The notes beneath the pieces are model-generated. The model was not told the origin of the DNA and searched no databases. It worked only from the letters and a program-made list of their open reading frames with translations. The translations under genes were made by a program, and so were the position numbers. This document shows positions 1-47,797 of a stretch of 47,797 nucleotides of DNA, piece after piece. The stretch's first letter is position 1, and each line of letters starts with the position of its first letter. The DNA is taken from NCBI GenBank assembly GCA_038087875.1, contig JAXLNO010005746.1:62001-109797 (forward strand), read 5' to 3'. Source of the DNA: Malacoraja senta (taxonomy: Eukaryota).

Positions 1-26
1 ACCTAGGTCTCTGGTGGTGGTTGCAG

Positions 27-132
27 TTCCACCTTCAGCAAACCCAACACCACAAATATCACCCAGAACAAGCCTCTCCATCACCAGTGTAGCAGTGTGA
101 CAACACAATGTGAGCAACTCACAACAAAATAG
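27..132 (+). pseudogene. Orphan stalk-like exon with in-frame TGA (98-100); also 19904-20009 and 32395-32500
   Basis: Paralogue of 6776-6881 with TTA changed to TGA. Confidence 0.4.
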
Positions 133-288
133 GTTGAGAAACAGGAAGACACAAGGAAGTACAGATGCAGTGATATCTGATAGTCCGCTCGAGTAGATTG
201 CAACCCAATGGTGGGAACATTGAATTTTCTAGTGTTAAGTAATTAACCCACAACAATCTTTTCCCCTAATCTCCGTCCCTTTCCACAT

Positions 289-314
289 CTATATATATAT
301 ATATATATATATAT
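289..314. repeat. (TA)n microsatellite, length-variable among paralogues (20168-20184, 32657-32680, short at ~7036)
   Basis: Seen directly in the sequence. Confidence 0.95.
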
Positions 315-329
315 CCTTTCTTCCAGCTT

Positions 330-620
330 CATATTTCATGCCTCTTCTCTCAATATCTCATATCACCATATCTCACAGCCTTTTATCTTCTTTCCATCTC
401 TGGCCTTCGTCCACCCATCAGCCAATAACCCTCTCTCCCTCACCTGTATCCACCTATCACTTGCCAGGCTTCAGCCTTCCCCCACCTCTCTCCCAGCTTT
501 CTCCCCCCTACTACAATCAGCCTGAAGAAGGGTCCCAACCCAAAACCTTACCTATCCATGTTCTCTGGAGATGCTGCCTGGCCCATTGAGTTACTCCAGC
601 ATTATATGTCTGTTTTTGAG
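330..620 (+). mobile_element. Penelope-like element 3' end (also ~7050-7335, 10300-10540, 13560-13735, 20200-20480 and duplicates)
   Basis: Pyrimidine-rich stretch followed by CTGAAGAAGGGTC..GAAACGTCACC-type core and gatgctgcctg..gagttactccagc end. Confidence 0.6.
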
Positions 621-944
621 AAATAGGAAGTTGTGAGGTTGATAAGAAGATTTGAACAACAGTGTAAATATTTTGAAACCAAATCATTGGTTCCACGGGT
701 TAGGGTTGTTATGACAGTATGCAGGGTGGGTTATCAGATCTGTGAGGTGTGGAGAACCATGGTCAAGTCCAAATCCACCCGCATGTCACAGTGCCAGGGT
801 GAAGGGTGAGTGGGGCAGAGCAGGGTGGGACACTGGCACCAGAGTTAAACTCATAGTCATATAGTGCAGAAACAGGCCCTTCTTCCCAACTTGACCATGC
901 TGACCAAACTGCCCACCTACACTTGTAGTAGTGTAGTTACTATA

Positions 945-1225
945 TGTAGTGTACTCCAGCAGTATGAACATTGACTTCTCCAATTTCAGGTGGTCCTTGC
1001 TTTCTCCCTCCTTCCCCTTCCCTTCCCAGCTCTCCCACAGCCTACTGTCACCTTCTCTTCCGTTCTTCTTCCTGCCTCCCGCCCCCACCTCCACATCAGT
1101 CTGAAGAAGGATCTCGACCCGAAACATCACCTATTCCTTCGCTCCATAGATGCTGCCTCACCCGCTGAGTTTCTCCAGCATTTTTTACTACCTTCGTTTT
1201 TTCCAGCATCTGCAGTTCTTTCTTA
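945..1225 (+). mobile_element. Penelope-like element 3' end with GIY-YIG C-terminal remnant (also ~20810-21090 and ~33310-33590)
   Basis: PSGMNIDFSNFR (20822-20857) resembles the P-x-G-(M/L)-N end of Penelope endonuclease ORFs. It is followed by a hammerhead-like core at 1101-1128. Confidence 0.65.
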
Positions 1226-1231
1226 AACCTA

Positions 1232-1457
1232 AACTAGTTTAGTTTAGTTTAGAGATACAGCGTGGAAACTGGCCCTTCGCCTACCGAGTCCGCACCGAAC
1301 AGTGATCCCACGCATTAACATCCTACATGCACTGGGGACTATTTATACTTATACCAAGCCAACTAACCTACTAACCAATACGTTTTTGGAGTGTGGGAGG
1401 AAACTGAAGATCTCGGAGAAAACCCAGGCGGTCACGGGGAGAACGTACAAACTCCCT
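1232..1457 (-). mobile_element. V-SINE, minus strand; related copies at ~4634-5030, 6490-6760, 7640-7935, 11608-11895, 14706-14930, 17965-18195, 19530-19885, 21100-21315 and in the duplicated blocks
   Basis: (tttag)n-agatacagc tail, followed by tgtgggaggaaac..gggagaacgt(a/g)caaactcc, the reverse complement of the V-SINE central domain. Confidence 0.85.
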
Positions 1458-1577
1458 AAACAAGAGTGAGGGTTAACTTCTGGATTCACCCTCAGACACA
1501 GACACATTACCTTGGTTTTACAGTAGAAATCCCTTCAAATGCTTTCATGAAGTTCTTTTCCAAAATAATTGCTATAT

Positions 1578-2100
1578 ACACAGTCATAGTGTGACTCAGT
1601 GTGGAAACAGGCCCTTCTGCCCAACTTGCCGACACCAGCCAACATGTCCCAGGCCAGCTACACTAGTTCCACCTGCTCGCATTTGCCCCATATCCCTCCA
1701 AACCTGTCCTATCCAAGTACCCTATCTAACTGTATCTAAAACGTTAGGATAGTCCCTGCCTCACTACCTCCTCTGGCAGTTTGTTCCATATACCCACCAC
1801 CCTTTCTGTGAAAAAGTTACCCCTCAGATTCCTATTGAATCTTTTCCCCTTCACATTACACCTATGTCCTCTGGTCCCCGATTCACCTGCACTGGGAAAG
1901 TGACACTGTGCATCTACCCAATCTATTCCTCTTGTAATTTTATACATCTCTATAAGATCACCGCTCATCCTCCTGCGCTCCAAGGAATGGAATCCCAGCC
2001 TACTCAACCTCACTATAGCTCAGACCATGTAATCCTGGCAACATCCTCATAAATCTTCTCTGTATCCTTTCCAGCTAGACAACATCTTTCCTATAACACG
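1578..2100 (-). mobile_element. CR1 LINE 3' fragment (also ~21440-21955 and ~33945-34465)
   Basis: Encodes SLERRRMSGDLIEMYK..TRGH..RGNFFTERVVGIWNKLP, followed by the 3' tail. Confidence 0.85.
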
Positions 2101-2440
2101 ATGCTTTTGAAAGACCCATCTGGTTATTATATCAATTGATCACTAATTACTGTTCTCACCTCTAATGACAAGAGCAGCTTAGGTTAACCAATAAAATATG
2201 TTTGTTAATAAACAGCTTTTTAAACAAAACCAGTTCTGCTGTTTGGCATAATTCTTTCCTAAAAGCAAGTGATTATACAATCCTTATACAATACTTGGGG
2301 TGCTGTATCAGGTAATATGGTTAATGTAGCTATTTATTGCAGATAAATTGCAGGGGTGTGGAGGCAAGGTCAATGGATATTTTAAAGTTAGTTTTGATGT
2401 AGGAACAGGCCAGGGTAACATGTAGGCTATGAGAAAGATT

Positions 2441-4629
2441 AGTCTTTAGATTCTGGAGTAGTTCCTGAGGATTGGAGGGTAGCTAATGTAACCCCACTTT
2501 TTAAAAATGGAGGGAGAGAGAAAACGGGGAATTACAGACCAGTTAGTCTAACATCGGTAGTGGGGAAACTGCTAGAGTCAGTTATTAAAGATGGGATAGC
2601 AGCACATTTGGAAAATGGTGAAATCATTGAACAAAGTCAGCATCGATTTATGAAAGGTAAATCATGTCTGACGAATCTTATAGAAGTTTCTAGGATGTAA
2701 CTAGTAGAGTGGATAAGGGAGAACCAGTGGATGTGTTATATCTGGACTTTCAGAAGGCTTTCGACAAGGTCCCACATAAGAGATTAATATACAAACTTAA
2801 AGCACACGGTATTGGGGGTTCAGTATTGATGTGGATAGAGAACTGGCTGGCAGACAGGAAGCAAAGAGTAGGAGTAAACGGGTCCTTTTCAGAATGGCAG
2901 GCAGTGACTAGTGGGGTACCGCAAAGCTCAGTGCTGGGACCCCAGCTATTTTCAATATATATTAATGATCTGGACGAGGGAATTGAATGCAACATCTCCA
3001 AGTTTGTGGATGACACGAAGCTGGCAGGCACTGTTAGCTGTGAGGAGTGTGCTAGGTGGCTGCAAGATGACTTGGATAGGCTGGGTGAGTGGGCAAATGC
3101 ATGGCAGATGCAGTATAATGTGGATAAATGTGAGGTTATCCACTTTGTGGCAAAAACAGGAAAGTAGACTATTACCTGAATGGTGGCCAATTAGGAAAAG
3201 GGGAGATGCAACGAGACGTGGGTGTCATGGTACACCAGTCATTGAAAGTAGGCATGCAGGTGCAGCAGGCAGTGAAGAAAGCGAATGGTATGTTAGCATT
3301 CATAGCAAAAGGACTTGAGTATAGGAGCAGGGAGATTCTACTGCAGTTGTACAGGGTCTTGGTGAGACCACACCTGGAGTATTGCGTACAGTTTTGGTCT
3401 CCTAATCTGAGGAAGGACATTCTTGCCATAGAGGGAGTACAGAGAAGGTTCACCAGACAGATTCCTGGGATGTCAGGACTTTCATATGAAGAAAGACTGG
3501 ATAGACTTGGCTTGTACTCGCTAGAATTTAGAAGATTGAGGGGGAATCTTATAGAAACTTACAAAATTCTTAAGGGGTTGGACAGGCTAGATGCAGGAAG
3601 ATTGTTCCCGATGTTGGGGAAGTCCAGAACAAGGGGTCACCGTTTAAGGATAAAGGGGAAATCTTTTAGGACTGAGATGAGAAAAACATTTTTTTTTTTT
3701 TGAAAATATTTTTTATTGGAGATAAAACACAACATATTATCATCATTACCAGTCTTACATTTTTAAATTGATAATATCATCAATTATTATTACATTGTCT
3801 CCAATACCTTTTGCCTTTTTAAAAAAAAAATTTTAAACTAGATAGAACTAAAAAGATAGATGAAGTAAAGAAAGAAAAAAAAAAAAGAAAACAGAGAAGA
3901 AAAAGATAGTTAAAGAAGAATGGAAACATTTATTAAGATAAAAAACTTCGTTCGAGATATATTCGTACATTTCAGAGTATAACATTTCATCCATTCTTTA
4001 GCCCGAGTGCTAGTCAGGTTCTTGTGCTGAACCATTCTGACCCTTTAAATAATCAATAAAGGGAGACCATGTTCCAACGAATAATTCCTGTTTGTCCAAC
4101 AGGGCAAATCTGATTCTTTTCTTTCCACATTTGATTCTGATTCCACATCTGATTCTTTCCACATTTAAGGTCTCCGTCATTTCTATAATCCACATTTTGA
4201 TTGTGGGGGTTATAGGGCCTTTCCAAATCGCTGCAGGTAAGACCCGATTTTCTCCCGTTTTCAGATTCTTCGGCACGGAGCTAGTTGGCACTGGACTCAA
4301 GCCTCCATAGCGCCACCGGAAGTCAGTAAAAAAAAAAAAAAAGGGGGTAATCCTTTAGGACCGAGATGAGAAAAACATTTTTTACACAGAGAGTGGTGAA
4401 TCTCTGGAATTCTCTGCCACAGAATGTAGTTGAGGCCAGTTCATTGGCTATATTTAAGAGGGAGTTAGATGTGGCCCTTGTGGCTAAAGGGATCAGGGGG
4501 TATGGAGAGGATGCAGGTGCAGGATACTGAGTTGGATGATCAGCCATGATCATATTGAATGGCGGTGCAGGCTCGAAGGGACGAATGGCCTACTCCAGCA
4601 CCTATTTTCTATGTTTTTATGTTTCTATG
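2441..4629 (+). mobile_element. 5'-truncated CR1-clade LINE interrupted by the L1 (also 22295-30248 and 34807-36995)
   Basis: Motifs VPEDWRVANVTPLFK, YLDFQKAFDKVPH, GVPQ.SVLGP, DDTKL, RPHLEYCVQFW. Resumes after the L1 and ends in an 8-nt tail repeat (tttctatg). Confidence 0.92.
3689..4327 (-). mobile_element. Internally deleted L1 (3' end fused to 5' end); also 36055-36693
   Basis: Same poly(A) and 5' end as the full element. Junction CTTTCCAAA/TCGCTGCAGG at ~4227 removes the equivalent of 24040-29846. Confidence 0.93.
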
Positions 4630-5429
4630 CTTGGTTTAGAGATACCGCATGGAAACAGGCCCATTGGCCCACCGAGTCCACGCCGACCATTGATCACCTG
4701 TACACACTATGTTTAAGAAGGAACTGCAGATGCTGGAACATGAAGGTAGACAAAAACGCTGAGTTTCTCCAGCATTTTTGTCTACCTGTACACACTAGTT
4801 CTGTTATCCCACTTTTCTCATCCATTCCCTACACATTTGCGACAATCTTGCAGAGGTATTTAACCTACAAACTCGCATGGATTAGGGATGTGGGAGGAAA
4901 CCAGAGCACCTGGAGGAAACCCACGAGGTCACAGGGAGAACGTTCAAACTCCACACAGACAGCACCCGTAGTCAGGATCAAACCCGGGTCTCTGGCGCTG
5001 TGAGGCAGCAGCTAACCGCTGCACCTCCGTGCTGCACTGAAGAGAGAAAGCAGGCTTGCGAGAGCAGACAGCAGAGCAGCAGGCCAGAGTGACAGCATCT
5101 GGAGTGGGAGTTGAACCCACAACACTCTGACTCCGGGTTTTTTTAAATTTCAAAATATACTTTATTAGAAAAATAAAATATATACAATTCATGATCCTTA
5201 CAAAACTCCATCCGACATTCTCGGAGGCTAGACATACATTCAATACTGTTTACACAAATTACACAAATTTACCCCATACCCTTGCCACTCATGTGGCCCA
5301 CTGGCGTGGGATACCTTCCCTTATTTTGAAGGGCATCTCCACCACACCCTGCCACAAACTGACCTTTTGCTGGATGTCTACGCTGGCCCATGGTGTGGCT
5401 CAAGTAGCCTGGGAAAGTCACCCAAGACA

Positions 5430-5750
5430 CCCTTGAGAGAGAGGGTGATGAATTTGTGCCCTAGCCTCAGAATAAAAGGGCATAGTTTGAGAAAGGAGAT
5501 GAGAACGAATTTCTTTAGTCAGAGGGTGGTGAATCTGTGGAAATCATTGCGACAGAAGGATGTGGAGGCCAAGTCAAAGGACATTTTTAAGGCGGAGATT
5601 GATAGATTCTTGATTAGTACGAGTGTCGGGGGTTATGGGGAGAAGGCAGGAGAATGGGGTCGAGAGGGAAAGATAGATCAGCCATGATTGATTGAATGGC
5701 GGAGTGGATCTGATGGGCCGAATGTCCTAATTCTGCTCTTATAACTTATG
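5430..5750 (+). mobile_element. CR1 3' fragment (also ~31050-31370 and ~37795-38115)
   Basis: Encodes GHSLRKEMRTNFFSQRVVNLW, with tail ttataacttatgaac. Confidence 0.8.
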
Positions 5751-6114
5751 AACATGATCTGGATTGATCTGATCATCTATCTCCACACAGAGGCTCCTTG
5801 ATCGTCAGTGGGGAGGGTGTGCTGCCTGTCCTATACCACTGTAGGACATAGTGGCAGGGTGAGGGGTGACCTCTGGAACTCAGCTCCAAACATTTTATTT
5901 ATCGGAGTCGCTGCCTCAAAAAGGCACCAATGTTTGCAGACACTTCTGTACATCCTGACATTCACCCAAAAGACAGCAGTACGTAGACTAGAACTCAAAG
6001 CTGGCTCTCCAGAATGTGAACTTTTAACTTTATTACCAATAGAATTGCCGTGTAAAATGCTGCACTTTGAATAATGGTTAAAGTAATCCAATGTAAATGA
6101 AGATGGCTGAATTT

Positions 6115-6345
6115 TGTCATAAGTTCTTAGGTGAAAGGAGTAGAATTAGGCCATTCGGCCCATCAAGTCTATTGCGCCATTCAATCATGGCTGATCCATC
6201 TCTCCCTCCTAACCCCATTCTCCTGCCTTCTCCCCATAACCCGTGACACCTGAACTAATTAAGAATCTCTCTATCTCTGCCTTAAAAATATCCACTGACA
6301 GCCTCTGTGGCAAAGAATTCCACAGATTCATCACCCTCTGACTAA
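6115..6345 (-). mobile_element. CR1 3' tail fragment
   Basis: Reverse complement of the CR1 tail (ggccattcggcccatc...gaattccacagattcatcaccctctgact). Confidence 0.75.
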
Positions 6346-6749
6346 AGGTTTATTGAGCAATTCTTTGCAATAATTTCATTTTGCATTGCAACTTGCATTT
6401 CAACAGTGCATTAAAGGTGCTGGAAAAGTCTCGAGGTTCTTCACAGCACCATTGTCAGGTGGAATTTGGCATCGAATCACATGCTGGTTCGAGATACAGC
6501 ATGGAAACAGACCCTTCGGCCCACCGAGTCCACGCTGACCATCGATCACCTGTTCACACTAGTCCCACATTACACCGCTTTTGCATGCACTCCCTACACA
6601 TTGAGTGCAATTCGACAAGAGGGCCAATTAACCTACAGAGCCACACGTTTTGGGGATGTGGGAGGATGCCGGAGCACCCAGAGGAGACCCACGCGGTCAC
6701 AGGGAGAACGTGCAAACTCCACACCGATAGCGCCGGAGGTCAGAATTGA

Positions 6750-7860
6750 ACCTAGGTCTCTGGTGGTGGTTGCAGTTCCACCTTCAGCAACCCCAACCCC
6801 ACAAATATCACCCAGTACAACCCTCTCCATCACCAGTGTAGCAGTGTTACAACACAATGCTAGCAACTCACGTCAAAATAGGTTGAGAAACAGGAAGACA
6901 CAAGGAAGTACAGATGCAGTAATATCTGATAGTCTGCTCGGGTAGATTGCAACCCAATGGTGGGAACATTGAATTTTCTAGTTTTAAGTAATTAACCCAC
7001 AACAATCCTTTCCCCTAACCTCCATCCCTTTCCAACTATATATATCCTTTCTTCCAGCTTCACATTTCATGCCTCTTCTCTCCATATCCCAAAGCTTTTT
7101 ATCTTCTTTCCATCTCTGGCCTTCGTTCACCCATCAGTCAATAACCATCTCTCCCTCACCTGTATCCACCTATCACTTGCCAGTCTTCATCCTTCCCCCA
7201 CCTCTCTCCCAACTTTCTCCCCCCTACTACAATCAGCCTGAAGAAGGGTCCCAACCGAAAACGTTACCTATCCATGTTCTCTGGAGATGCTCCCTGGCCC
7301 ATTGAGTTACTCCAGCATTATATGTTTGTTTTTGAGAAATAGGAAGTTGTGAGGTTGATAAGAAGATTTGAACACCAGTGTAAATATTTTGAAACCAAAT
7401 CATTGGTTCTACGGGTTAGGGTTGTTATGACTATGCAGGGTGGGTTATCAGATCTGTGAGGTGTGGAGAACCATGGTCAAATCCAAATCCACCTACATGT
7501 CACAGTGCCAGCGTGAAGGGTGAGTGGGGCAGAGCAGGGCGGGGCACTGGCACCAGAGTTAAACTCATAGAGTCATATAGCACAGAAACAGGCCCTTCTT
7601 CCCAACTTGACCATGCTGACCAAACTGCTTACCCACAATAGTTTAGTTTAGAGATACAGCGTGGAAACTGACCCTTCGTCCCACCGAGCCCGCACCGAAC
7701 AGCAATCCCCACGCATTAACACTATCCTACACGCACTAGGGACTATTTACAGCTGTTCCAAGCCAACTAACCTACAAACCTATATTTTTGGAGTGTGGGA
7801 GGAAAATGAAGATCTCGAAGAAAACCCAGGCGGTCACAGGGAGAATGTACAAATTCCATA
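6750..7860. repeat. Older, more diverged partial copy of bases 1-~1450 (also 39108-40218)
   Basis: Starts acctaggtctctggtggtgg. Homology is lost inside a V-SINE near 7860. Confidence 0.9.
6776..6881 (+). pseudogene. Orphan stalk-like exon, open version (VPPSATPTPQISPSTTLSITSVAVLQHNASNSRQN-R); also 39134-39239
   Basis: ttgcag| acceptor and AATAG|gttgag donor, phase 1 to 2 like exon 3, S/T/P-rich. The polypyrimidine tract is weak and there is no linked V exon. Confidence 0.4.
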
Positions 7861-8184
7861 CAGACAGCACCCGTAGTCTGTCTAACAGTCGAACCTGTCT
7901 GTAAGCGCTGTAAGGCAGCAGCTCTACCACTGCGCCACCCTAGTCCACTAGTCCCACTTGCCCGCATTTGACCCATCTCCTCATATATTGGTAAATATCC
8001 ATTTTTTACCCTCAGCCCGAAGTAGTGTCTCGGCCGGAATACAAACATGCACTTTTTGCCTCCACAGATGCTGCCTGACCCGTTGAGTTTTTCAGGTGTT
8101 CTGCCTATTGTTCCAGATTCTAGTATATGCAATCTCCTTTGTCTTCTCCCTCACACAACCCTAATCCTACCTCAACAATGTTAT

Positions 8185-8705
8185 CTCACAGAAGCTGATG
8201 GGTATATGGAAGGAACATGTCCAGAGGAGCTAGTGGAGACAGGTACTATTAACAACATTTAAAAGCATTAGGACATGGTACGTGAATAGGAAAGGTTTGT
8301 AGGGACAGGGGTCAAACAAAGGCCTGATTTTTACGGTGGCGCAGCCGTAGAGTTGCTGCCTTACATTGTATAACAGCGCCAGATACCCGGGTTTGATCCT
8401 GGCTACAGGTGCTTGTCTGTACATAGTCTGTACTTTCTCCCAGTGACCTGCATGAGTTTTCTCCGAGAACTTCAGTTTCCTCCCACACTCCAAAGATGAA
8501 CAGCTTTGTAGGTTAATTGGGTTGGTGTAAATGTAAACATTTGTGTTGATGTGCGGGGATCACTGGACGGTGCGGACACGGTGGGCCGGAGGGCCTGTTT
8601 CCGCACTGTATCTCTAAACTAAACTAAACTAAAGAGGGACTAGCGTACATGGGACATCTTGATCGGCATAGGGCAAGTTGTTTCCGTGCTGTATCACTCT
8701 ATGAT
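8185..8705 (+). mobile_element. CR1 3' tail with a nested full V-SINE
   Basis: CR1 tail sequence lies on both sides of 8333-8633. Confidence 0.65.
8333..8633 (+). mobile_element. Full-length V-SINE (HE1-like, tRNA-derived); also 40691-40991
   Basis: tRNA-like head (acggtggcgcag...gggtttgatcc), V-domain (ttctcccagtgacc..tttcctcccacactccaaag), CR1-like tail ending (ctaaa)n. Confidence 0.85.
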
Positions 8706-8819
8706 TTTATGAAGCACATCCTCAAACTAAGCTTTACCCGGTCTCCGATGCTCAAATATGTGAATTGTCCTTCAAGGAGTTTATCTGGTGACGTGAGTTG
8801 ACTTATCTGATCGCGTTTG

Positions 8820-9160
8820 GCAATAGACAATAGACAATATGTGCAGGAGTAGGCCTTTCGGCTCTTCGAGCCAGCATTGCCATTCAATATGATCATGGCT
8901 GATCATCCACAATCAGTACCCCTTTCCTGCCTTCTCCCCATTTCCCTGACTCCGCCATCTTTAAGAGCCCTATCTAGCTCTCTCTTGAAAGTATCCAGAG
9001 AACCTGCCTCCACCGCCCTCTGAGGCAGAGGATTCCACAGACTCACAACTCTCTGTGTGAAAAAGTTCACACATTCCAGGAGTAGAATTTGGCCATTCGG
9101 CCCATCGAGTCTACTCCGCCATTCAAACATGGCTGATCTCTGCCTCCTAACCCCATTCAA
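8820..9160 (-). mobile_element. Two adjacent CR1 3' tail fragments
   Basis: Reverse-complement CR1 tails. ORF 8903-9160 includes FFTQRVVSLWNPLPQRAVEAGSL. Confidence 0.75.
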
Positions 9161-9369
9161 GTTCGGACACAGTGTGCCTGCATTTGGGGGAGGGGGTTGA
9201 GGGGGTGGGCAAGGGAATGTTTGCAGTGGCGGACAGAGCGCCAGTCAAGTGGGCAAATGTCACCAGGATGAAGCAGAGCTTCGAGGAGATGCTCCAATCC
9301 AGGCAACAGGAGAGCGTTGCAGCGCACTCCTGATAGGTGCATTGTCCGTGGTGAGGAGGCTGGGGGAGG

Positions 9370-9517
9370 TGGCAAGTGAGTCACCAAGTTAGTCTCGAAC
9401 CACTGCAAAGTCGTTTCCTGAGTAAACGGAAATTGACTGTTTGACTTCTGTTGTGAATGAGGAAGAGGACAACTCAAACGCAGTGCAGGGACCAAACCGA
9501 TCCAACGTAGCCGAGAC
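9370..9517 (+). promoter_or_regulatory. Putative TATA-less proximal promoter/5'UTR with AP-1 and Ets/PU.1-like motifs
   Basis: TGAGTCA 9377-9383, TTTCCTG 9414-9420, ACGGAAAT 9426-9433 and GAGGAAG 9459-9465 lie upstream of the leader ATG. Identical at 41728-41875. Motif match only. Confidence 0.35.
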
Positions 9518-9614
9518 ATGGCGGTGGGACAGGGAGAATTCACCCACCAGAAACGGCCCAGATCCAGGGGAACAGTCGCTCTGCTGGTTCTTGTCGCTGT
9601 TGGTCTCACACCAG
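9518..9614 (+). CDS. Exon 1, leader/signal peptide MAVGQGEFTHQKRPRSRGTVALLVLVAVGLTP(G)
   Basis: ATG in strong Kozak context (GAGACATGG), basic n-region, hydrophobic VALLVLVAVGL, phase-1 donor CAG|GTAAAT joining in frame to G-SWG of the V exon. Not present in the supplied ORF track. Confidence 0.75.
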
Positions 9615-12600
9615 GTAAATCGTTGTTTTACAAAATGCTCTGTTCTTTAGAATTATTTACCAGCGCCTTGAATTATTTGTAACCGAGGACTTCTCTGTAC
9701 TGTGTGGGGAGCTGATGATCAATTGCTTAACACTCGTTAGTTCCTGTAGAGACTTCCATCAGCGGCTGTTGTCGTGTTGTGTGCAGCCAAATCGCACACA
9801 GCTAGCTCCCTGTGGAGAAGGGAGATAACCATCTAGAGCTTGCCTGGCCTTGTGGACCTCATTGAAACTTACCGAATAATGAAGTTTAATGTTTAATACC
9901 GAATAATGAAGGCCTGGATAGAGTGGATGGGATGAGGATGTTTCCATTAATGGGAGAGTCTAGGACCAGAGGCCGCAGCCTGAGAATTAAAGTCCGCAGC
10001 TGGCCCTGTTGATCTTGGGTGTAGGGGTAACTCTTGGCCCCAGAACAGATAGTTTGCTCCACTATTCTGGTGCAAACTATCTACAGGTGAACTTTCTCAG
10101 TGACTTGAGAGAGCAGACAGCAGATCAGCTAAATGCCTCGGCAAAGTGACATCACCTCCAGCAGTGGTGATTCCCCTCAGTACCGCACTCCCTCTGTCCT
10201 CGAGCTTCGGGAGTGGGAGTTGAACCAACGACTCTCTGACTTTTGGTGTGGTTCAGTTAGCCTGGGACAGAAGTTCTCCTCTTCTACCCGACGAGAATTC
10301 TGCAACACCCTCCCTCGCTGTTCCCCCTCTGTGATTCCTCCTGCTCTCCGGCTCTGCGATCTACATTTCCTTATCACCATCTGCTTTGTTCTGTCGTTTT
10401 CACGCCTTACCTCTTGCATATCTCTTGACTTCCTCCACCCCCCGACACTCGGTCTGAAGAAGGGTCTCGACCCAAAACGTCACCCATTCCTTCTCTCCAT
10501 AGATGCCGCCTGACCCGCTGCGTTACTCCAGCATTTAGTGTCTATCAAAGACACACGGCACTCCCTCCACGCACTGCAATGGGAAATGTTGAACCTAAAC
10601 CTTAGCATATTCAAAGAAAAAACCTGTGAAAGCCAGCCGATGGGAACAGGCGGGCATCTCAAATGAGGAAGCACCAGAGTGACTGTCCAATTTAGCATTT
10701 GGAGAAGTTGTGGTAATCTCTCTGTAAAGACTGTCCAAACACATGGTGTCTTCACTCTAGTTTATTGCATACATTGTATTCGTATACACACATATTGCCC
10801 TAGCTGTTCGTGGTCCGTTACCGGAGCTAGAGAGCGAGCTAGGGGTGGGAAGGTTACATTTATACTGAAGCTAATGGGGAGTGGTTAGTAGAAGTGAGGT
10901 CACCATGTTAAAGGAACATGCACGGCTCTACATCTCCACTCTGAGAAAAGCCAGCTTCCTTACAACAGACTCTGCTGCTCGAGCTGTTCTTCACACCGTG
11001 CTTTCCCCAGCCTCTGAGTTCGGACCTGGACTGATCTGATGATGTGTCTCCACCCCAGCTCCTGAATCTGCAGAGTTTCACATGTGTTAGAGTCATAGTG
11101 ATACAGTGTGGAAACAGGCCCTTCGGCCCAACTTACCCACACCGGCCAACATGTCTCAGTAACACCTGTCCCACCTGTTTACGTTTGGTACATGTCCCTT
11201 CAAACCTGTCCTATCCATGTACCTGTCCAACTGTTTCTTAAATGATGGGATAGTCCTTGCCTCAACTATTTCCTCTGGCAGCTTGATCCATACACCGACC
11301 AGACTTTGTGTGAAAAAGACACCTCATGATTATTCCAGGTGGACGTGGAGTTTGAAACATCAGTGGCAGATCCAGCTTCCACCTCAGGCCGGGAAGTTTA
11401 GTTCAATGGGGCACAAAGTGCTGGCGTAACTCAGTAGGTCAGGCAGTATCTCATGGTCTTGACTTGAAACGTCACCTATCCATGTTCTCCACAGATGCTG
11501 CCTGACCTGCTGAGTCACCACTGGCTATTCAGCTTTAGTAAAACACAAAGTGCTGGAGTAACACTGCAGGTCAAGCTGCATCACTTGGTGACTTTCCTTT
11601 AGTGACTTTAGAGATACAGCACGGAAACAGGCCCTTTGGCCCACAAAGTCCACGCCGACCATCGATCACATGGCACAGTAACACTATCCTACACACGAGG
11701 AACAAATTACAATTTTAACATAAGCCAGTTAACCTACAAACCTGCATGTCTTTGGAGTGTGGGAGGAAACTGGAGAAAGCCCACGCTGTCACGGGGAGAA
11801 CGTACAAACTCCGTACAGACAGCACCCGAGGTTAGGATCAAACACGGGTCTCTGGCGCTGTAAGGCAGCAACTCTACCCCTGTGCCACTGTGCCACCATG
11901 TCTCTACCTGTAACATTACATATCCATGTTCTCCAGCGATGTTGCCTGACCTGCTGAGGCATCACAGGCAGCTGCCTATTCAGCTTTAGTAAAGCACAAA
12001 GTGCTGGAGTTCAAGTTCAAGTCCAAGTGAGTTTATTGTAATGTGTCCCTGATAGGACAATGAAATTCTTGCTTTGCTTCAGCACACAGAACATAGTAGG
12101 CATTTACTACAAAACAAATCAGTGTGTCCATATACCATACCATACCAGTAAGTCAGCAGGTCAGGCAGCATCTCTGGAGAACATGGATAGGTGACGTTTA
12201 CGGTTGAGACCTGAATAAGGGGTAGGCCATTTTGGACTCAAATGAGGAAAAACCTTTTCACCCAGAGAATTCCACTTTCTCCAGAGATAGTTCCTGACCC
12301 GTTGAGTTACTCCAGCACTTTGTGTCCTTTTGAGTATTAACCAGCATCTGCAGTTCCTTGTTTCTACTTGTTCAATGGGGAAGTGGGTTGTAGTGAGATT
12401 GAACACAGGGTGGGTCAGAGTGAGTGACAGGTTTGGCTTCCTGTCACATGACCACCACTCAGGTCAAGCCACGCCCACAGGGAAGGATGATCCGGGCGCC
12501 AGGTAGATTCAGAAGCACTTCTGCTTTCACTGGAACTTGGGGAACAATCCCGGTGAAATGGGAATTAACACCTGCGGGAAAAGCATTAAAGTGCAACAGG

Positions 12601-15600
12601 TTCTATGCAAAAGAAGAGAGACACAAAATGCTGGAGTAACTCAGCGGGACGGGCAGCATCTCTGGAGAGAAGGAATGGGTGAGGGAACATCACCTGTCGG
12701 TTTCTCCAGAGATGCTGGCTGCCCCGCTGAGTTACTCCAGCTCTTTGTGTCTATCTTTGGTGTAAACCAGCACCTGCAGTCCCTTGCTGCACATGATCTA
12801 TGCGAAACCATGAACCTGTCTGAACAGCACAAATGACATGTTTTTTATTGTTAAACCTCAGCTTGTGTTGCTGCAGTGTGAGTGATCTTTCATCATTAAT
12901 GTGCCCACAGGGTCATGGGGAATAACTGGACCCGAGGAGGTGAGGGGAGAGTTGGGGCAGTCGGTCACTGTGGAATGTCCATATGATCAGGAATACAGTG
13001 ACAACAGGAAGCTATGGAGTAAAGGTGATGATTACTGGAAATCATCTACCGTGGTTTCTACTGATCACCCACGACAAGGGGGAACATCGATGACTGATAA
13101 CAAAACAGAACAGATACTTTCAGTAACCATCAACAACCTGGAGAAGAGTGATGAAGGACGCTACTGGTGTGTGATAGGAAATGGAATATTGTCATTCAAT
13201 GAAAAGACCTCCATCTCATTGAAGGTTTCTGAAGGTACGTTGACGATCTCTCCTCACTCCCCCAGATGTGAAAATTCCAGCCTGGGATTTCCCGGCCTCG
13301 GTCCTGACGGTGCCACATCCCCGGGGGTCCGTGGGGGGGGTGGAGTTTGGGGGGAGGTGAGGGGGGGTAGCGGGGACCCGCTGCATGGGGCCACACCAAG
13401 ATCCCACTGTCCCAGGAGCAGTGTGGGGGGTGGGGGGGATCTCATCAATGGGGACCGGCGGTCCTGCTGCTGACGGTTCATTTCCCCAAACACGATCTCT
13501 CCGGGACCAGAACCTCTGGTGCCCCCTCACTGGAGCAGGGGGGGTGGAACCACCCCCTCACCCTCTCCCCCTTCCCGTCAATGTCACACCCACCACACAC
13601 ACAACATCTGAAGAAGGGTCCCAAGCCTATACATCGTCTATTCATTCCATCCACAGATGCTGCCTGACTTGCTGAGTTACTCCAGCACTTTGTGTATTGC
13701 TCAAGATTCCAACACCTGCAATTCCTTGTGTCTCACAAACTATGGTGATTCATGAGCTCAGTTTATTGTTGTCGCCTGTACTGAGGTACAGGGAAAAGCT
13801 TTTACCATGTTTCCAATGAGGGCCAAGTCATTGGGTATTTTAAGTGGAGATTGACATGTTCTTGATTAGTACGCATGTCAAGCGATATGAGGAGAAGGCA
13901 GGAGAATGGGGTTGAGAGGGAGAGATAGATCAGCCATGATTAAATGGCGGAGTAGACTCAATGGACCAAATGGCCTAATTTTGCCCCTATTATTTATGAA
14001 CTTATGAACTAAGAATCCGCATGATGTGAGTGATATAGACTTTACACTGAGCCACACAAACTGTACAAGATGAAATACTCAACGGGTCGGGCAGCATTTA
14101 TGGAGAGAGACGAGACTTAATGTTTCAGGTAGATACCTCCAACCAAATTGCATTATTTTCAATTCAGTCCACGTAATGAAAATAGTCCATGGATCCTCCC
14201 ACTCCCAAGTTCTTCTCCAACGTAGAAGACACTTGCCTAACTCCAGCAGCAGGCAGATAACACAGCCTGTGGGACTCTGAAGGGCATGAAAGAAGTCAAT
14301 GAATGCTTGCGACCATCCGGTGGCATCTTAATGGGTGAGCCTCCTGTCTAGATCAAGAGGCTTGGTCCATCTATGGTGGCCTCAGAAGGATCTTTGCCCA
14401 AATGTGTGGAGTCGGATTTGAACCCAGGAATCTCCCCACACAGAGCAAGAGCGTTCCCAACTGAGGCATCTCCCACACCTCACTAAAGAGGCACAGGACG
14501 TGCTCTCAGACATTGAATGTTCAAAAACTTCATTCACTTTATCTCCACAAGGGTCTCAAACAAGCCGCCCAGATATGATCATCACCACCGAGGCAGCAAG
14601 TTCCACTGAGTCTCTTGGTTCAACACCTCCAAACAGGTTAGTAACTCGAAGAGCCAACTCAGCCTCACCTGAGAACAAATTAGTTAAGTTCAGTTCAGCT
14701 CAGTTAAAAGATACAGCGTGGAAATGGACCCTTTGGCCCACCGAGTCCGCTCTGATCAGCGATCACCCCATACACTAGTTCTGTTCTACATACTAGGGGC
14801 AATTTACTACAAACCGGCATGTCTTTGGAATGTGGGAGGATACTGGAGAACCCAGAGTAAACTCTTGTGATCACAGGGAGAACATACAAACTATGTACTG
14901 ACAGCACCAGTAGTCCGGTAGGATCGTATCCTATTGTTAGTAAAATCATGCCCAGTACTTTGAGAAAGCGTGGCTGATCACATTCCAGTCCATTGATAAA
15001 TAGTCATTGGCCTTGATTAAAGTCCCTCTGTCCTTAGTACACCCAGTGGCCCTACCATTGTGAATGTCTACCCTTATTTGATGCCAAAAACAAATAACTT
15101 CACACTTATCATGGTTCAATACCGGCTGGCATTGCTCTGCCCAACATACCAGTTGCTTCTTATCCCTCTGTGGTCTATGATTATCGTACTATCCAAAATG
15201 CTACAATTTTGGTGTAATCTGTAAACACGTTAATCATACTTCCAACAATAACATCTAAGGCCGGCAGATGGGAATAGTGTCGATAAGGACATCTTGGTCG
15301 GCGTGGGGAAATTAGGTCCAAGGACATGTTTTCATGCTCTATGTCTGACCACCAACATGAACATCTAAGTTGTCAATGTATGTAGTCATGGAACACCTCC
15401 AAGGAATGGGTGCATGTTGCGATATAAACATCTTACCAATGTCTACGCCACAACCTTGGATCACACTGAATGATTCCGTGTGCAATATGATGGAAATAAT
15501 CTCCCAGCGTTGATCTTTGATAACTCTGTGTGGAAGTAATAATATTTCCTTGGATTTCCAGGGACATCGTGTTGAATGTTCGCCGTGTTTGGGGTGTGTC

Positions 15601-18600
15601 ACGCTGGGTACTCTTTGGAGTTCTGCTTCTCTTCCCGGTTTCCATCAGCTGTGTGACAACTTTTAAAAGGTAAAAGTTTGTAATCTCTTCACTCTGGTGA
15701 TGACATTAAATTCAATTGGAAATGATGGGAATTTACTTTAGAATTCTGGAGATAAAGTGTGGACATACAGTGCCCTCCATAATGTTTTGGACAAAGACCC
15801 TTCATTTATTTATTTGCCTCTGTATTCCACAATTTGAGATTTGTAATAGAAAAAAATCACATGTGGTGAAAGTGCACATGGACAGATTTTATTAAAGGGT
15901 ATTTTTATACATTTTGGTTTCACCATGTAGAGATTACAGCTGTGTTTATACACAGTCCCCCCATTTCAGGGCACCATAATGTTTTGGACTCATTGCTTCA
16001 CAGGTGTTTGTAATTGCTCAGGTGTGTTTAATTGCCTCCTCAATGCAGGGATAAGAAAGCTCTCAGCACCTAGTCTTTCCTCCAGTCTTTCCATCACATT
16101 TGGAAACTTTTATTGCTGTTTATCAACATGAGGACCAAAGTTGTGCCAATGAAAGTCAAAGAAGCCATTCTGAGACTGAGAAACAAGAATAAAACTGTTA
16201 GAAACATCAGCCAAACATTAGGCTTACCAAAATCAACTGTTTGGAACATCATTAAGAAGAAAGAGAGCACTGGTGAGCTTACTAATCGCAAAGGGAATGG
16301 CAGGCCAAGGAAAACATCAGGCCAAGATGACAAAAGAATTATCTCTATAAAAAAAAAAACCCCAAACACCTGTCCGACAGATCAGAAACACTCTTCAGGA
16401 GTCAGGCGTGGATTTGTCAATGACCACTGTCTGCAAAAGATTTCATGAACATAAATACGGAGGCTACACTGCAAGATGCAAACCACTGGTTAGCCGCAAA
16501 AGTAGGATGGCCGGCTTACAGTTTGCGAAGAAGTACTTAAAAGAGCAACCACAGTGCTGGAAAAAGGTCTTGTGGACAGATGAGATGTACAGGGTCTTGG
16601 TGAGACCACACCTGGAGTATTGCGTACAGTTTTGGTCTCCAAATCTGAGGAAGGACATTATAGCCATAGAGGGAGTGCAGAGAAGGTTTACCAGACTGAT
16701 TCCTGGGATGTCAGGACTTTCATATGAAGAAAGACTGGATAGACTTGGCTTATACTCGCTAGAATTTAGGAGATTGAGAGGGGATCTTATAGAAACGTAC
16801 AAAATTCTTATGGGGTTGGACAGGCTAGATGCAGGAAGATTGTTCCCGATGTTGGGGAAGTCCAGGACAAGGGGTCACAGCTTAAGGATAAGGGGGAAAT
16901 CCTTTAAGACCGAGATGAGGAAAAACTTTTTCACACAGAGAGTGGTGAATCTCTGGAACTCTCTGCCAAAGAGGGTAGTTGAGGCCAGTTCATTGGCTAT
17001 ATTTAAGAGGGAGTTAGATGTGGCCCTTGTGGCTAAGGGGATCAGGGGGTATGGAGAGAAGGCAGGTAACGGGATACTGAGTTGGATGATCAGCCATGAT
17101 CATATTGAATGGCGGTGCAGGCTCGAAGGGCCAAATGGCCTACTCCTGCACCTATTTTCTATGTATCTATGTACCTATGTAAGATTAACATATCAGAGTA
17201 ATGGCAAGAGCAAAGTATGGAGGAGGGAAGGAACTGCCCAAGATCTAAAGTATACCACCTCATCTGTGAAACACGGTGGTGGCGGTGTTATGTCCTGGGC
17301 ATGTATGGCTGCTGAAGGTACTGACCCATTTATCTTCCTTGGTAATGCAACTGCTGATGGTAGTAGCATAATGAATTCTGACATGTATAGAGACATCCTA
17401 TCTGCTAGAGGTTGACGGTTCATTCTACAGCAAGACAATGATTCCAAACATATTGCAAAAACAACAAAGGAATTTTTCAAAGCTAAAAAATGGTCAATTC
17501 TTGAGTGGCCAAGTCATTCTGAACCCAATTGAGCATGCCTTTTATATGCTGAAGAGAAAACCGAAGGTGACTCGCCCCCAAAACAAGCATAAGCTAAAGA
17601 TGGCTGCAATACAGGCCTGGCAGAGCATCACCAGAGAAGACACCCAGCAACTGGTGATGTCCATGAATCTCAGACTTCAGGCATTCATTCCATGCAAAGG
17701 ATATGCAACAAAATACTAAACATGACTACTTTCATTTACATGACATTGTTGTGTCCCAAACATTATGGTGCCCTGAACTGGACTATGTATAATCACTGCT
17801 GTAATTTCTACCTGGTGAAATCAAAATGTATAAAAATCTGAAAATGTGCACTTTAACATATGTGATTTTTTTTTCTATTACTATTCTCAAATTGTGGAGT
17901 ACAGAGGCAAATAAATAAATGATGGGTCTTTGTCCCAAACATTATGGAGGGCACTGTAGGCCCTACAGCCAACCAAATCCGCGCTGACCAATGATCACCC
18001 CGTACACTCGCACTATCCTACACATGAGGGACAATTTACAATTATACAGAAGCCAATTAACCTACAAAACTACACGTCTTTGGATTGTGGGAGGAAACCG
18101 GAGCACCCGGATAAAACCCACGCTGCCTTACAGCGCCAAACCCGGGTCTCTGGCGCTGTAAGGCAGTAACTCTACCGCTGCGCCACTGTGCCGCCCTGGG
18201 TCATTTCCTCGGGTAAAATTTGATGGTAGAGATTATAAACTGCGTTTTAATTGTTATTCAAGGAAAAAAACAGCCGAGATGTTGGAGATGGGGTCGGCAG
18301 CGGTGGAGGGAGGAGAAGAACAGTGCCGGTGAGCTGGCTGGGAGACGGCGTGGGAGGTGAGGGGAAAAGGGTGCGTTGGTTGGTCGAGGTGTGGGCGGAG
18401 TGCGAGTGGGCTGCTGGAGGCCCTGCAGCAGCCGGTGGATCGGGTGCCGCTGGAGGCCCCACAGAGGTCGGGGACGAGCGTGCGGAGCGGACACGTCCTG
18501 CAGCGGCACGGAGCGGCGGTGGAGGCACCAACAACATCGCCAGGCCAGGCCGACCCCTGCAACTCCCACCCAGTGCAGTCCCCACGACAACGAGACTTTA

Positions 18601-22400: not shown

Positions 22401-23860
22401 CTAACATCGGTAGTGGGGAAACTGCTAGAGTCAGTTATTAAAGATGGGATAGCAGCACATTTGGAAAATGGTGAAATCATTGGACAAAGTCAGCATGGAT
22501 TTATGAAAGGTAAATCATGTCTGACGAATCTTATAGAATTTTTCTAGGATGTAACTAGTAGAGTGGATAAGGGAGAACCAGTGGATGTGTTATATCTGGA
22601 CTTTCAGAAGGCTTTCGACAAGGTCCCACATAAGAGATTAATATACAAACTTAAAGCACACGGTATTGGGGGTTCAGTATTGATGTGGATAGAGAACTGG
22701 CTGGCAGACAGGAAGCAAAGAGTAGGAGTAAACGGGTCCTTTTCAGAAGGGCAGACAGTGACTAGTGGGGTACCGCAAAGCTCAGTGCTGGGACCCCAAC
22801 TATTTACAATATATATTAATTATTTGGACGAGGGAATTGAATGCAACATCTCCAAGTTTGCGGATGACACGAAGCTGGCAGGCAGTATTAGCTGTGAGGA
22901 GTGTGCTAGGAGGCTGCAAGATGACTTGGATAGGCTGGGTGAGTGGGCAAATGCATGGCAGATGCAGTATAATGTGGATAAATGTGAGGTTATCCACTTT
23001 GTGGCAAAAACAGGAAAGTAGACTATTACCTGAATGGTGGCCAATTAGGAAAAGGGGAGATGCAACGAAACCTGGGTGTCATGGTACACCAGTCATTGAA
23101 AGTAGGCATGCAGGTGCAGCAGGCAGTGAAGAAAGCGAATGGTATGTGAGCATTCATAGCAAAAGGACTTGAGTATAGGAGCAGGGAGATTCTACTGCAG
23201 TTGTACAGGGTCTTGGTGAGACCACACCTGGAGTATTGCGTACAGTTTTGGTCTCCTAATCTGAGGAAGGACATTCTTGCCATAGAGGGAGTACAGAGAA
23301 GGTTCACAAGACTGATTCCTGGGATGTCAGGACTTTCATATGAAGAAAGACTGGATAGACTCGGCTTGTACTCGCTAGAATTTAGAAGATTGAGGGGGAA
23401 TCTTATAGAAACTTACAACATTGTTAAGGGGTTGGACAGGCTAGATGCAGGAAGATTGCTCCCGATGTTGGGGAAGTCCAGAACAAGGGGTCACAGTTTA
23501 AGGATAAAGGGGAAATCTTTTAGGACTGAGATGAGAAAAACATTTTTTTTTTTTGAAAATATTTTTTATTGGAGATAAAACACAACATATTATCATCATT
23601 ACCAGTCTTACATTTTTAAATTGATAATATCGTCAATTATTATTACATTGTCTCCAATACCTTTTGCCTTTTTTTTAAAAATTTTTTAAACTAGATAGAA
23701 CTAAAAAGATAGATGAAGTAAAGAAAGAAAAAAAAAAGAAAACAGAGAAGAAAAAGATAGTTAAAGAAGAATGGAAACATTTATTAAGATAAAAAACTTC
23801 GTTCGAGATATATTCGTACATTTCAGAGTATAACATTTCATCCATTCTTTAGCCCGAGTG

Positions 23861-32368: not shown

Positions 32369-35300
32369 ACCTAGGTCTCTGGTGGTGGTTGCAGTTCCAC
32401 CTTCAGCAAACCCAACACCACAAATATCACCCAGAACAAGCCTCTCCATCACCAGTGTAGCAGTGTGACAACACAATGTGAGCAACTCACAACAAAATAG
32501 GTTGAGAAACAGGAAGACACAAGGAAGTACAGATGCAGTGATATCTGATAGTCCGCTCGAGTAGATTGCAACCCAATGGTGGGAACATTGAATTTTCTAG
32601 TGTTAAGTAATTAACCCACAACAATCTTTTCCCCTAATCTCCGTCCCTTTCCACATCTATATATATATATATATATATATCCTTTCTTCCAGCTTCATAT
32701 TTCATGCCTCTTCTCTCAATATCTCATATCACCATATCTCACAGCCTTTTATCTTCTTTCCATCTCTGGCCTTCGTCCACCCATCAGCCAATAACCCTCT
32801 CTCCCTCACCTGTATCCACCTATCACTTGCCAGGCTTCAGCCTTCCCCCACCTCTCTCCCAGCTTTCTCCCCCCTACTACAATCAGCCTGAAGAAGGGTC
32901 CCAACCCAAAACCTTACCTATCCATGTTCTCTGGAGATGCTGCCTGGCCCATTGAGTTACTCCAGCATTATATGTCTGTTTTTGAGAAATAGGAAGTTGT
33001 GAGGTTGATAAGAAGATTTGAACAACAGTGTAAATATTTTGAAACCAAATCATTGGTTCCACGGGTTAGGGTTGTTATGACAGTATGCAGGGTGGGTTAT
33101 CAGATCTGTGAGGTGTGGAGAACCATGGTCAAGTCCAAATCCACCCGCATGTCACAGTGCCAGGGTGAAGGGTGAGTGGGGCAGAGCAGGGTGGGACACT
33201 GGCACCAGAGTTAAACTCATAGTCATATAGTGCAGAAACAGGCCCTTCTTCCCAACTTGACCATGCTGACCAAACTGCCCACCTACACTTGTAGTAGTGT
33301 AGTTACTATATGTAGTGTACTCCAGCAGTATGAACATTGACTTCTCCAATTTCAGGTGGTCCTTGCTTTCTCCCTCCTTCCCCTTCCCTTCCCAGCTCTC
33401 CCACAGCCTACTGTCACCTTCTCTTCCGTTCTTCTTCCTGCCTCCCGCCCCCACCTCCACATCAGTCTGAAGAAGGATCTCGACCCGAAACATCACCTAT
33501 TCCTTCGCTCCATAGATGCTGCCTCACCCGCTGAGTTTCTCCAGCATTTTTTACTACCTTCGTTTTTTCCAGCATCTGCAGTTCTTTCTTAAACCTAAAC
33601 TAGTTTAGTTTAGTTTAGAGATACAGCGTGGAAACTGGCCCTTCGCCTACCGAGTCCGCACCGAACAGTGATCCCACGCATTAACATCCTACATGCACTG
33701 GGGACTATTTATACTTATACCAAGCCAACTAACCTACTAACCAATACGTTTTTGGAGTGTGGGAGGAAACTGAAGATCTCGGAGAAAACCCAGGCGGTCA
33801 CGGGGAGAACGTACAAACTCCCTAAACAAGAGTGAGGGTTAACTTCTGGATTCACCCTCAGACACAGACACATTACCTTGGTTTTACAGTAGAAATCCCT
33901 TCAAATGCTTTCATGAAGTTCTTTTCCAAAATAATTGCTATATACACAGTCATAGTGTGACTCAGTGTGGAAACAGGCCCTTCTGCCCAACTTGCCGACA
34001 CCAGCCAACATGTCCCAGGCCAGCTACACTAGTTCCACCTGCTCGCATTTGCCCCATATCCCTCCAAACCTGTCCTATCCAAGTACCCTATCTAACTGTA
34101 TCTAAAACGTTAGGATAGTCCCTGCCTCACTACCTCCTCTGGCAGTTTGTTCCATATACCCACCACCCTTTCTGTGAAAAAGTTACCCCTCAGATTCCTA
34201 TTGAATCTTTTCCCCTTCACATTACACCTATGTCCTCTGGTCCCCGATTCACCTGCACTGGGAAAGTGACACTGTGCATCTACCCAATCTATTCCTCTTG
34301 TAATTTTATACATCTCTATAAGATCACCGCTCATCCTCCTGCGCTCCAAGGAATGGAATCCCAGCCTACTCAACCTCACTATAGCTCAGACCATGTAATC
34401 CTGGCAACATCCTCATAAATCTTCTCTGTATCCTTTCCAGCTAGACAACATCTTTCCTATAACACGATGCTTTTGAAAGACCCATCTGGTTATTATATCA
34501 ATTGATCACTAATTACTGTTCTCACCTCTAATGACAAGAGCAGCTTAGGTTAACCAATAAAATATGTTTGTTAATAAACAGCTTTTTAAACAAAACCAGT
34601 TCTGCTGTTTGGCATAATTCTTTCCTAAAAGCAAGTGATTATACAATCCTTATACAATACTTGGGGTGCTGTATCAGGTAATATGGTTAATGTAGCTATT
34701 TATTGCAGATAAATTGCAGGGGTGTGGAGGCAAGGTCAATGGATATTTTAAAGTTAGTTTTGATGTAGGAACAGGCCAGGGTAACATGTAGGCTATGAGA
34801 AAGATTAGTCTTTAGATTCTGGAGTAGTTCCTGAGGATTGGAGGGTAGCTAATGTAACCCCACTTTTTAAAAATGGAGGGAGAGAGAAAACGGGGAATTA
34901 CAGACCAGTTAGTCTAACATCGGTAGTGGGGAAACTGCTAGAGTCAGTTATTAAAGATGGGATAGCAGCACATTTGGAAAATGGTGAAATCATTGAACAA
35001 AGTCAGCATCGATTTATGAAAGGTAAATCATGTCTGACGAATCTTATAGAAGTTTCTAGGATGTAACTAGTAGAGTGGATAAGGGAGAACCAGTGGATGT
35101 GTTATATCTGGACTTTCAGAAGGCTTTCGACAAGGTCCCACATAAGAGATTAATATACAAACTTAAAGCACACGGTATTGGGGGTTCAGTATTGATGTGG
35201 ATAGAGAACTGGCTGGCAGACAGGAAGCAAAGAGTAGGAGTAAACGGGTCCTTTTCAGAATGGCAGGCAGTGACTAGTGGGGTACCGCAAAGCTCAGTGC

Positions 35301-47300: not shown

Positions 47301-47797
47301 AAATCATGCCCAGTACTTTGAGAAAGCGTGGCTGATCACATTCCAGTCCATTGATAAATAGTCATTGGCCTTGATTAAAGTCCCTCTGTCCTTAGTACAC
47401 CCAGTGGCCCTACCATTGTGAATGTCTACCCTTATTTGATGCCAAAAACAAATAACTTCACACTTATCATGGTTCAATACCGGCTGGCATTGCTCTGCCC
47501 AACATACCAGTTGCTTCTTATCCCTCTGTGGTCTATGATTATCGTACTATCCAAAATGCTACAATTTTGGTGTAATCTGTAAACACGTTAATCATACTTC
47601 CAACAATAACATCTAAGGCCGGCAGATGGGAATAGTGTCGATAAGGACATCTTGGTCGGCGTGGGGAAATTAGGTCCAAGGACATGTTTTCATGCTCTAT
47701 GTCTGACCACCAACATGAACATCTAAGTTGTCAATGTATGTAGTCATGGAACACCTCCAAGGAATGGGTGCATGTTGCGATATAAACATCTTACCAA
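32369..47797. repeat. Segmental/tandem duplication copy B (truncated by window end)
   Basis: Begins acctaggtctctggtggtgg as at position 1 and ends matching position 15439. Confidence 0.97.
41876..46994 (+). pseudogene. Second copy of the receptor (exons 41876-41972, 45270-45592, 46910-46994; TM exon expected just beyond the window), frameshifted in the V exon
   Basis: Same exons as copy A. AACAGGAAG becomes AACAGAAG at ~45366, giving a premature TGA at 45449-45451. May be a consensus error. Confidence 0.7.

Follow-up and report, generated by a model that had tools for sequence, protein, structure and literature searches.

Mosaic ancestry of a V exon in a tandem array of CD300/CMRF35-like receptor genes in the skate Malacoraja senta: a probable gene-conversion tract

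The window analyzed here, a stretch of 47,797 nucleotides from the skate Malacoraja senta, is the 3' end of an unplaced contig (JAXLNO010005746.1, 109,797 bp; hereafter C5746) in a genome assembly of 1.94 Gb. Positions given without a prefix are those of the window. C5746 carries a tandem array in which a unit of about 32,368 to 32,369 bp (~32.4 kb) is repeated from C5746:8281 to the contig end; three units (U1, U2, and U3) are complete, and a fourth (U4) is represented by its first 4.4 kb only. Within the window, this arrangement yields two duplicates on the forward strand. Copy A (1..15439), delimited by self-BLAST, MAFFT alignment, and the unit register, consists of the end of U2 and the start of U3. 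Copy B (32369..47797), delimited by self-BLAST and MAFFT, consists of the end of U3 and the start of U4 and is cut off by the end of C5746. The V exon of copy A sits in U3 and that of copy B in U4. Internal sub-repeats of 3 to 4 kb with 97% identity fill much of the unit (e.g., 19681-23970 versus 32167-36485), and a reverse-transcriptase open reading frame (ORF) (RVT_1, E = 5e-31; 23861-26444, reverse strand) lies between the genes.

Using Amblyraja radiata CMRF35-like molecule 3 proteins as guides, we delimited five exons with canonical splice sites in the copy A gene, all on the forward strand. Exon 1 (9518..9614) holds the start codon and signal peptide, matches the Amblyraja protein in tblastn at 100% over 33 amino acids, and ends in a GT donor; its counterpart in copy B is at 41876-41972. 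Exon 2 (12911..13234) encodes an IgV domain (Pfam V-set, E = 2.9e-13), is of phase 1-1 and intact, and is flanked by AG/GT splice sites. In copy B as assembled, the corresponding exon (45270..45592) is thrown out of frame by the deletion of 1 bp at 45365/45366. Exon 3 (14552..14636) encodes a Ser/Thr-rich stalk, exon 4 (15562..15669) a transmembrane helix with an arginine, and exon 5 (18263..18332) a short cytoplasmic tail that ends at the stop codon. Intron 4 contains the remnant of a Tc1/mariner-type transposase (HTH_Tnp_Tc3_2; 16408-17415, forward strand). The resulting ORF of 227 amino acids has a type I membrane layout, in which the signal peptide is followed by a single IgV domain, the stalk, the transmembrane helix with one arginine in it or at its edge, and a 22-amino-acid tail that contains no tyrosine. 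A search for RNA runs containing the receptor gene found none.

Several comparisons place this receptor near the CD300 family. Its nearest named relatives are Amblyraja radiata proteins annotated as CMRF35-like molecule 3 (V-domain identity 76% and 72%), and its sequence matches in the PDB are pIgR domains and CD300f/CLM-1, the latter being the best single-domain match (E = 1e-14). An AlphaFold model of the V domain (pLDDT 93), in which residues 83-89 form the F strand and residues 98-107 the G strand, retrieved mouse CD300lf as its top Foldseek match (TM 0.89 to 0.91, 32% identity). Mouse CD300lf (CLM-1), the murine norovirus receptor (PDB 5ffl, 6e47, and 5or7), is thus the best structural match of the skate domain, which differs from it in missing the second cysteine pair of its relatives. 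The second (C-C') disulfide is absent from the skate domain, where KLWSKG (codons 13014-13022) stands in place of the consensus WCK and the C' cysteine is missing; the consensus of 24 relatives keeps both C-C' cysteines, and one Amblyraja relative still has WCK. Neither cysteine of the second disulfide that is typical of CD300 and pIgR V domains has survived in this skate subfamily. Because the cysteine pair present in most relatives is missing, we call the product CD300/CMRF35-like rather than a proven CD300 orthologue; judged by sequence, it is probably a receptor of the kind described in skates as MDIR. The modular domain immune-type receptors (MDIR) of the clearnose skate are summarized in PMC3031540 as a CD300/TREM/pIgR-like multigene family. 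Like the array genes, they are V-domain receptors of the CD300/pIgR-like kind encoded by a skate multigene family. Amblyraja radiata has three family genes spaced ~11 kb apart, versus the 32-kb spacing in the array.

The array also exists on a chromosome-scale scaffold of the same assembly (hereafter C5), where C5:747410-680178 (reverse strand) is 99.86% identical to C5746:1-67241. The C5 array has two full units (V1 and V2), versus at least 3.1 on C5746, and either the haplotypes differ in copy number or one assembly path has collapsed or over-extended the array. The C5 array is succeeded by another gene (C5:669000-676500, reverse strand). Its leader and first intron match the units at 99% identity up to the equivalent of 12827; past that point, it has two V exons ~1 kb apart with 83% and 90% identity to those of the units. 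Homogenization in this gene ends just 5' of the V exon. Further family members lie on C5 at 670 to 790 kb, and the unplaced contigs C3381 and C2302 partly duplicate neighboring C5 family members with equal scores. C5746 has the appearance of an alternative haplotype of the C5 locus that escaped purging. The unit tails are nonetheless five distinct sequences (U1, V1, U2, V2, and U3), with 11 to 22 private substitutions apiece, so that in a diploid at least three units must lie on one haplotype. A and B presumably share a haplotype. The order and number of the units, and the adjacency of A and B as drawn, rest on the assembly of the unplaced C5746, and the two copies might instead be partly allelic.

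A preliminary description of this DNA had reported near-identical duplicates that differ about once per kilobase, with an excess of differences in the 3' half of the IgV exon and the adjacent intron. Near identity holds: self-BLAST and MAFFT give 99.77%, with 19 substitutions and 8 indel events. The background rate is lower than had been estimated, at ~0.6 differences per kb outside the patch, and the clustering is pronounced, since 10 of the 19 substitutions fall within 240 bp (13132..13371 in copy A, 45490..45729 in copy B, forward strand), accompanied by 2 indels. A cluster of 10 was reached in none of 200,000 random placements, the largest simulated being 6, and the Poisson tail is ~1e-12. 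Five of the substitutions alter the exon, exactly as described: from A to B, they are A>G at 13132 (N>D), C>A at 13137 (N>K), T>G at 13182 (N>K), G>C at 13184 (G>A), and T>G at 13189 (L>V). The other five are in the adjoining intron (13239, 13260, 13304, 13340, and 13371), together with one-base indels at 13283 and 13341. On the AlphaFold model, residues 91, 92, and 94 are predicted to lie between the F and G strands, in the FG (CDR3-like) loop to which they had been assigned, and residues 75 and 76 to lie at the other pole of the domain, just past the E strand.

The origin of these differences becomes apparent when all near-identical V exons of the genome are considered. There are six, with 96 to 100% identity: U1, U2, A (U3), and B (U4) on C5746 and V1 and V2 on C5. 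Two lineages can be recognized among them. In the unit "head," which comprises part of intron 1 and the 5' two-thirds of the V exon (11021..13086, forward strand, from the unit alignment), the first units, which we call C-type, differ from all later units, which we call A-type, by about 4%, and the 83 variable columns that separate them are confined to offsets 9-2066 of the unit (window 11029-13086). The patch occupies offsets 2112-2351. Divergence of the lineage level occurs nowhere else in the 32.4-kb unit outside the head, and the other 30 kb of the unit differ by ~0.1% among units.

Against this background, B changes its relative within the exon. In the triplet of A, B, and C-type, B agrees with A at 76 of 76 informative sites left of 13087 and with the C-type at 11 of 15 sites right of 13131. 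The maximum chi-square is 66 (permutation P < 5e-5), with the left breakpoint between 13086/13087 and 13131/13132; the right end of the tract lies at or past 13371, downstream of which all copies are identical. In the six-way alignment, the alleles of B at 13132, 13137, 13184, 13239, 13260, 13304, 13340/1, and 13371 are common to U2, U1, and V1, and the patch alleles of A are found in V2 only. Positions 13132, 13137, and 13184 are, accordingly, old differences between the A-type and C-type lineages. Two exon positions behave otherwise: the B allele at 13189 (G at 45547) is common to U2 only, and the A allele at 13182 is private to A. Within its tract, B carries C-type alleles except for a CG retained at 45517-45518.

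A genome search for a paralogue with the IDKL/GKAIV patch, which the preliminary description had called for, found the donor type. The first units at C5746:10166 (U1), outside the window, and C5:736751 (V1) carry C-type sequence, and the V exon of U2 (C5746:42534) is a mosaic almost identical to that of B and has the GKAIV loop too. Moreover, U2, but not B, has the private variants of U1 at 13872 and 14442 and a TA at 13159-60, so the tract in U2 spans at least 1.3 kb. The combination of patch alleles in A is absent from 14 other, more distant V exons, and we take the patch of A as native A-type. Outgroup paralogues indicate that the C-type group is derived at 13137, 13184, 13239, 13304, and 13340, that A and V2 are derived at 13132, 13260, and 13371, and that A alone is derived at 13182. 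Positions 13160 and 13189, 29 bp apart, occur in all four allele combinations. A PHI test across the family gave a weak signal (P = 0.03 for the V exon and 0.08 with flanks), and on the six array copies, it was uninformative.

The amount of divergence in the patch matches that of the lineages. It is 4.2% (10/240), versus 3.7% (76/2066) between A-type and C-type heads (P = 0.72), and its density is equal in exon and intron (5/103 versus 5/137, P = 0.75). Background-level divergence that is spread evenly over exon and intron argues for a conversion or crossover tract. We consider it likely that the A/B cluster represents a tract acquired by gene conversion or unequal crossing-over from a third paralogue in the same tandem array, the origin favored by the donor-type alleles in U1 and V1, by the switch of relative, and by the divergence at background level; a tract from a third paralogue was among the origins suggested in the preliminary description.

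The history of the array could then be as follows. A 32.4-kb array of a single-IgV CD300/CMRF35-like gene would have been homogenized almost throughout by unequal crossing-over or gene conversion. The exception would be an island around the V exon, in which two older lineages ~4% apart survived, the C-type in the first unit and the A-type in later units. A would remain A-type through 13371, and B and U2 would be A-type up to a switch point between 13087 and 13131 and C-type from there on. The cluster of differences between A and B would, on this account, be a stretch of different ancestry at least 240 bp long, either a conversion tract or the offset between two crossover junctions, and it would carry already-selected variants from unit to unit. 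The direction of transfer was presumably from the C-type into B.

Short-read runs, available as short contigs, give no copy number, and transposable elements swamp most depth bins. They do hold both variant types. Reference and C-type letters are both present at 13260, 13304, and 13341 in run X1 and at 13132 and 13160 in run X2 (two runs, one organism); the patch, therefore, is not an assembly error. This check, proposed earlier for all variants, fell short at one site: the T of A at 13182 is absent from both runs, in which only G is read. Two of the three variants private to A in the stretch covered by reads (14258 and 14515) are present in the short-read contigs, and k-mers of the exact B haplotype are partially covered, at 0.53 and 0.41, in the best runs. 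A contig of run X1 covering 13248-13391 apparently is A-type at 13260 but C-type at 13304 and 13340/1, a combination that matches no assembled copy and that hints at further recombinants or a different individual.

The end of copy B requires separate comment. Its 1-bp deletion (GG>G), at the A coordinate 13007 inside the V exon, was overlooked in the preliminary description and is reported in none of the short-read runs. Over the final 4.4 kb of the contig, five 1-bp indels are private to B (45365-45366, 44998, 45642, 45978, and 46124), whereas none of the other units has an indel of its own there. The frameshift is probably a consensus error at the contig end rather than the mark of a pseudogene. 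As a practical matter, the contig of this window duplicates a chromosomal locus, and its last few kilobases contain probable consensus errors, the frameshift included; copy-number and pseudogene calls in this skate receptor family need long-read confirmation. Outside the patch, the letters G>C at 15003, A>C at 15006, T>C at 15013, and T>C at 15017 appear in all four runs (three organisms), and every assembled unit has the reference letter at these positions; they may come from a nearby paralogue or reflect a difference between assembly and runs.

All five exon changes are nonsynonymous, a count that had been offered as a sign of diversifying or balancing selection on the ligand-binding loop. 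The count is correct, but for the A/B pair alone, 5 nonsynonymous to 0 synonymous changes have P = 0.29 to 0.32, and no selection can therefore be read from the pair. The family gives a different picture. Across 16 distinct family V exons, parsimony counts, which ignore recombination and involve no likelihood model, amount to 195 nonsynonymous and 28 synonymous changes (dN/dS ~2.0, binomial P = 1.3e-4). Nonsynonymous changes per site number 1.7 in the FG loop, 1.9 in the C'C'' loop, 0.96 in the BC loop, and 0.47 in the framework, compared with 0.39 at synonymous sites and 0.28 to 0.45 in cleanly aligned intron flanks. At the family level, the CDR-like loops overall, with 1.5 nonsynonymous changes per site, thus evolve 3 to 4 times faster than introns or synonymous sites. 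Such counts support diversifying selection on the putative binding loops in the family as a whole, so the idea of selection survives for the family and not for the A/B pair, whose exon and intron are equally affected at background divergence, with both lineages derived.

Two other accounts of the A/B cluster were weighed. After duplication, new point mutations in the ligand-binding FG loop might have gone to fixation in one copy under diversifying or balancing selection, and both the nonsynonymous character of all five exon differences, three of them in the FG loop, and the speed of the family's loops speak for such a process. We judge it highly improbable. The adjoining intron is as strongly affected as the exon, the 5:0 count has a P of ~0.3, the same alleles are present in three other copies and extend into the intron, and the changes are divided between both lineages. 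What is left for recent point changes is 13182, private to A and unsupported by reads, and 13189, found in B and U2. Shared haplotypes, equal density in exon and intron, and derived states in both lineages likewise led us to reject the idea that the cluster arose by local hypermutation or by fresh positive selection. Sequencing error was rejected as the cause of the patch, the letters being common to four assembled copies and short-read contigs.

Alternatively, the assembly may be redundant, with C5746 an unpurged haplotig or an over-extended reassembly of C5; A and B would then be alleles or misjoined units, and the patch would be allelic, though still derived by conversion. The 99.86% identity of C5746:1-67241 to C5, the two full units on C5 against at least 3.1 on C5746, and the equal-scoring duplication of neighboring family members by C3381 and C2302 all fit such redundancy, as do the end of C5746 within the array and the wealth of 1-bp indels at the end of B. 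Yet the five distinct unit tails, each with 11 to 22 private substitutions, put at least three units on one haplotype of a diploid, and the private variants of A at 14258 and 14515, two of the three in the covered stretch, are seen in short-read contigs. We regard redundancy as an improbable source of the A/B differences. A conversion or crossover tract from within the array is the reading that we retain.

Selection on the CDR-like loops may also be what keeps the island from homogenization. Selection would, in the strongest version of this idea, actively maintain the V exon as a diverged island, with homogenization halting at ~12827 and at the G-run ending at 13375 and sub-exon exchange recombining FG-loop variants among units. 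We put this forward tentatively and think it rather unlikely. If it were true, a cartilaginous fish would gain a combinatorial repertoire, encoded in the germline, of an innate receptor of the CD300-like kind, and the driver would perhaps be pathogens that use such receptors, as norovirus does with CD300lf. The paired-receptor setting suggested in the preliminary description found no backing: no ITIM-bearing partner was seen, and the receptor's own 22-amino-acid tail lacks tyrosine.

Mosaic binding-domain exons within homogenized arrays or introns are the rule in several immune receptor families (MHC, KIR, and Ly49-type). As in those families, recombination in the skate array keeps the flanks alike and the binding-site exon diverse and mosaic. 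The skate array differs in that its diverged island also takes in, within the first unit, ~1.9 kb of intron 1, so an edge effect of the array could explain part of the pattern without selection. A closer comparison comes from the same superfamily, in which primate CD300 paralogues are documented to exchange sequence by gene conversion (PMC12447643). Exchange of Ig exons between the tandem paralogues CD300A and CD300C produces mosaic V domains there too, and conversion keeps the ectodomains of that inhibitory/activating pair alike. In the skate array, by contrast, the units are identical elsewhere, there is no sign of an inhibitory partner, and an old variant was moved into part of an exon. Mosaic binding-exon conversion in immune receptor arrays is already known; what is new here is a well-resolved skate case. 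It is a clean, well-bounded example of how a tandem immune receptor array evolves, with long stretches identical, the binding exon mosaic, and the loops fast, and it comes from skates, whose innate Ig-type receptors have received little study.

Three details of the tract merit mention. A G-run (G-quadruplex-like) motif at 13323..13375 (forward strand), found by a regular-expression scan, lies at the right edge of both the tract and the diverged island. It is one of 16 such motifs in the 47.8-kb window; it is possibly a recombination end point and is also a spot prone to indel errors. Lys76 of IDKL (13135-13137) is encoded by AAA in the C-type copies and by AAG in three genes of Amblyraja, and most paralogues have AAC (Asn) at this codon; the lysine may have arisen in parallel in Amblyraja and the C-type copies. 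A trans-species age for the patch is not supported, as the Amblyraja radiata genes that read IDKL use AAG rather than AAA and have few of the C-type intron alleles, so that common descent is not demonstrated. Finally, the G>A change at 13239 (45597 in B) is at +5 of the exon 2 splice donor, which reads GTACGT in A and GTACAT in B, U2, U1, and V1. The base at this position is G in each of the 14 more distant paralogues and in three Amblyraja genes, and the change could weaken splicing of the units that carry the C-type patch.
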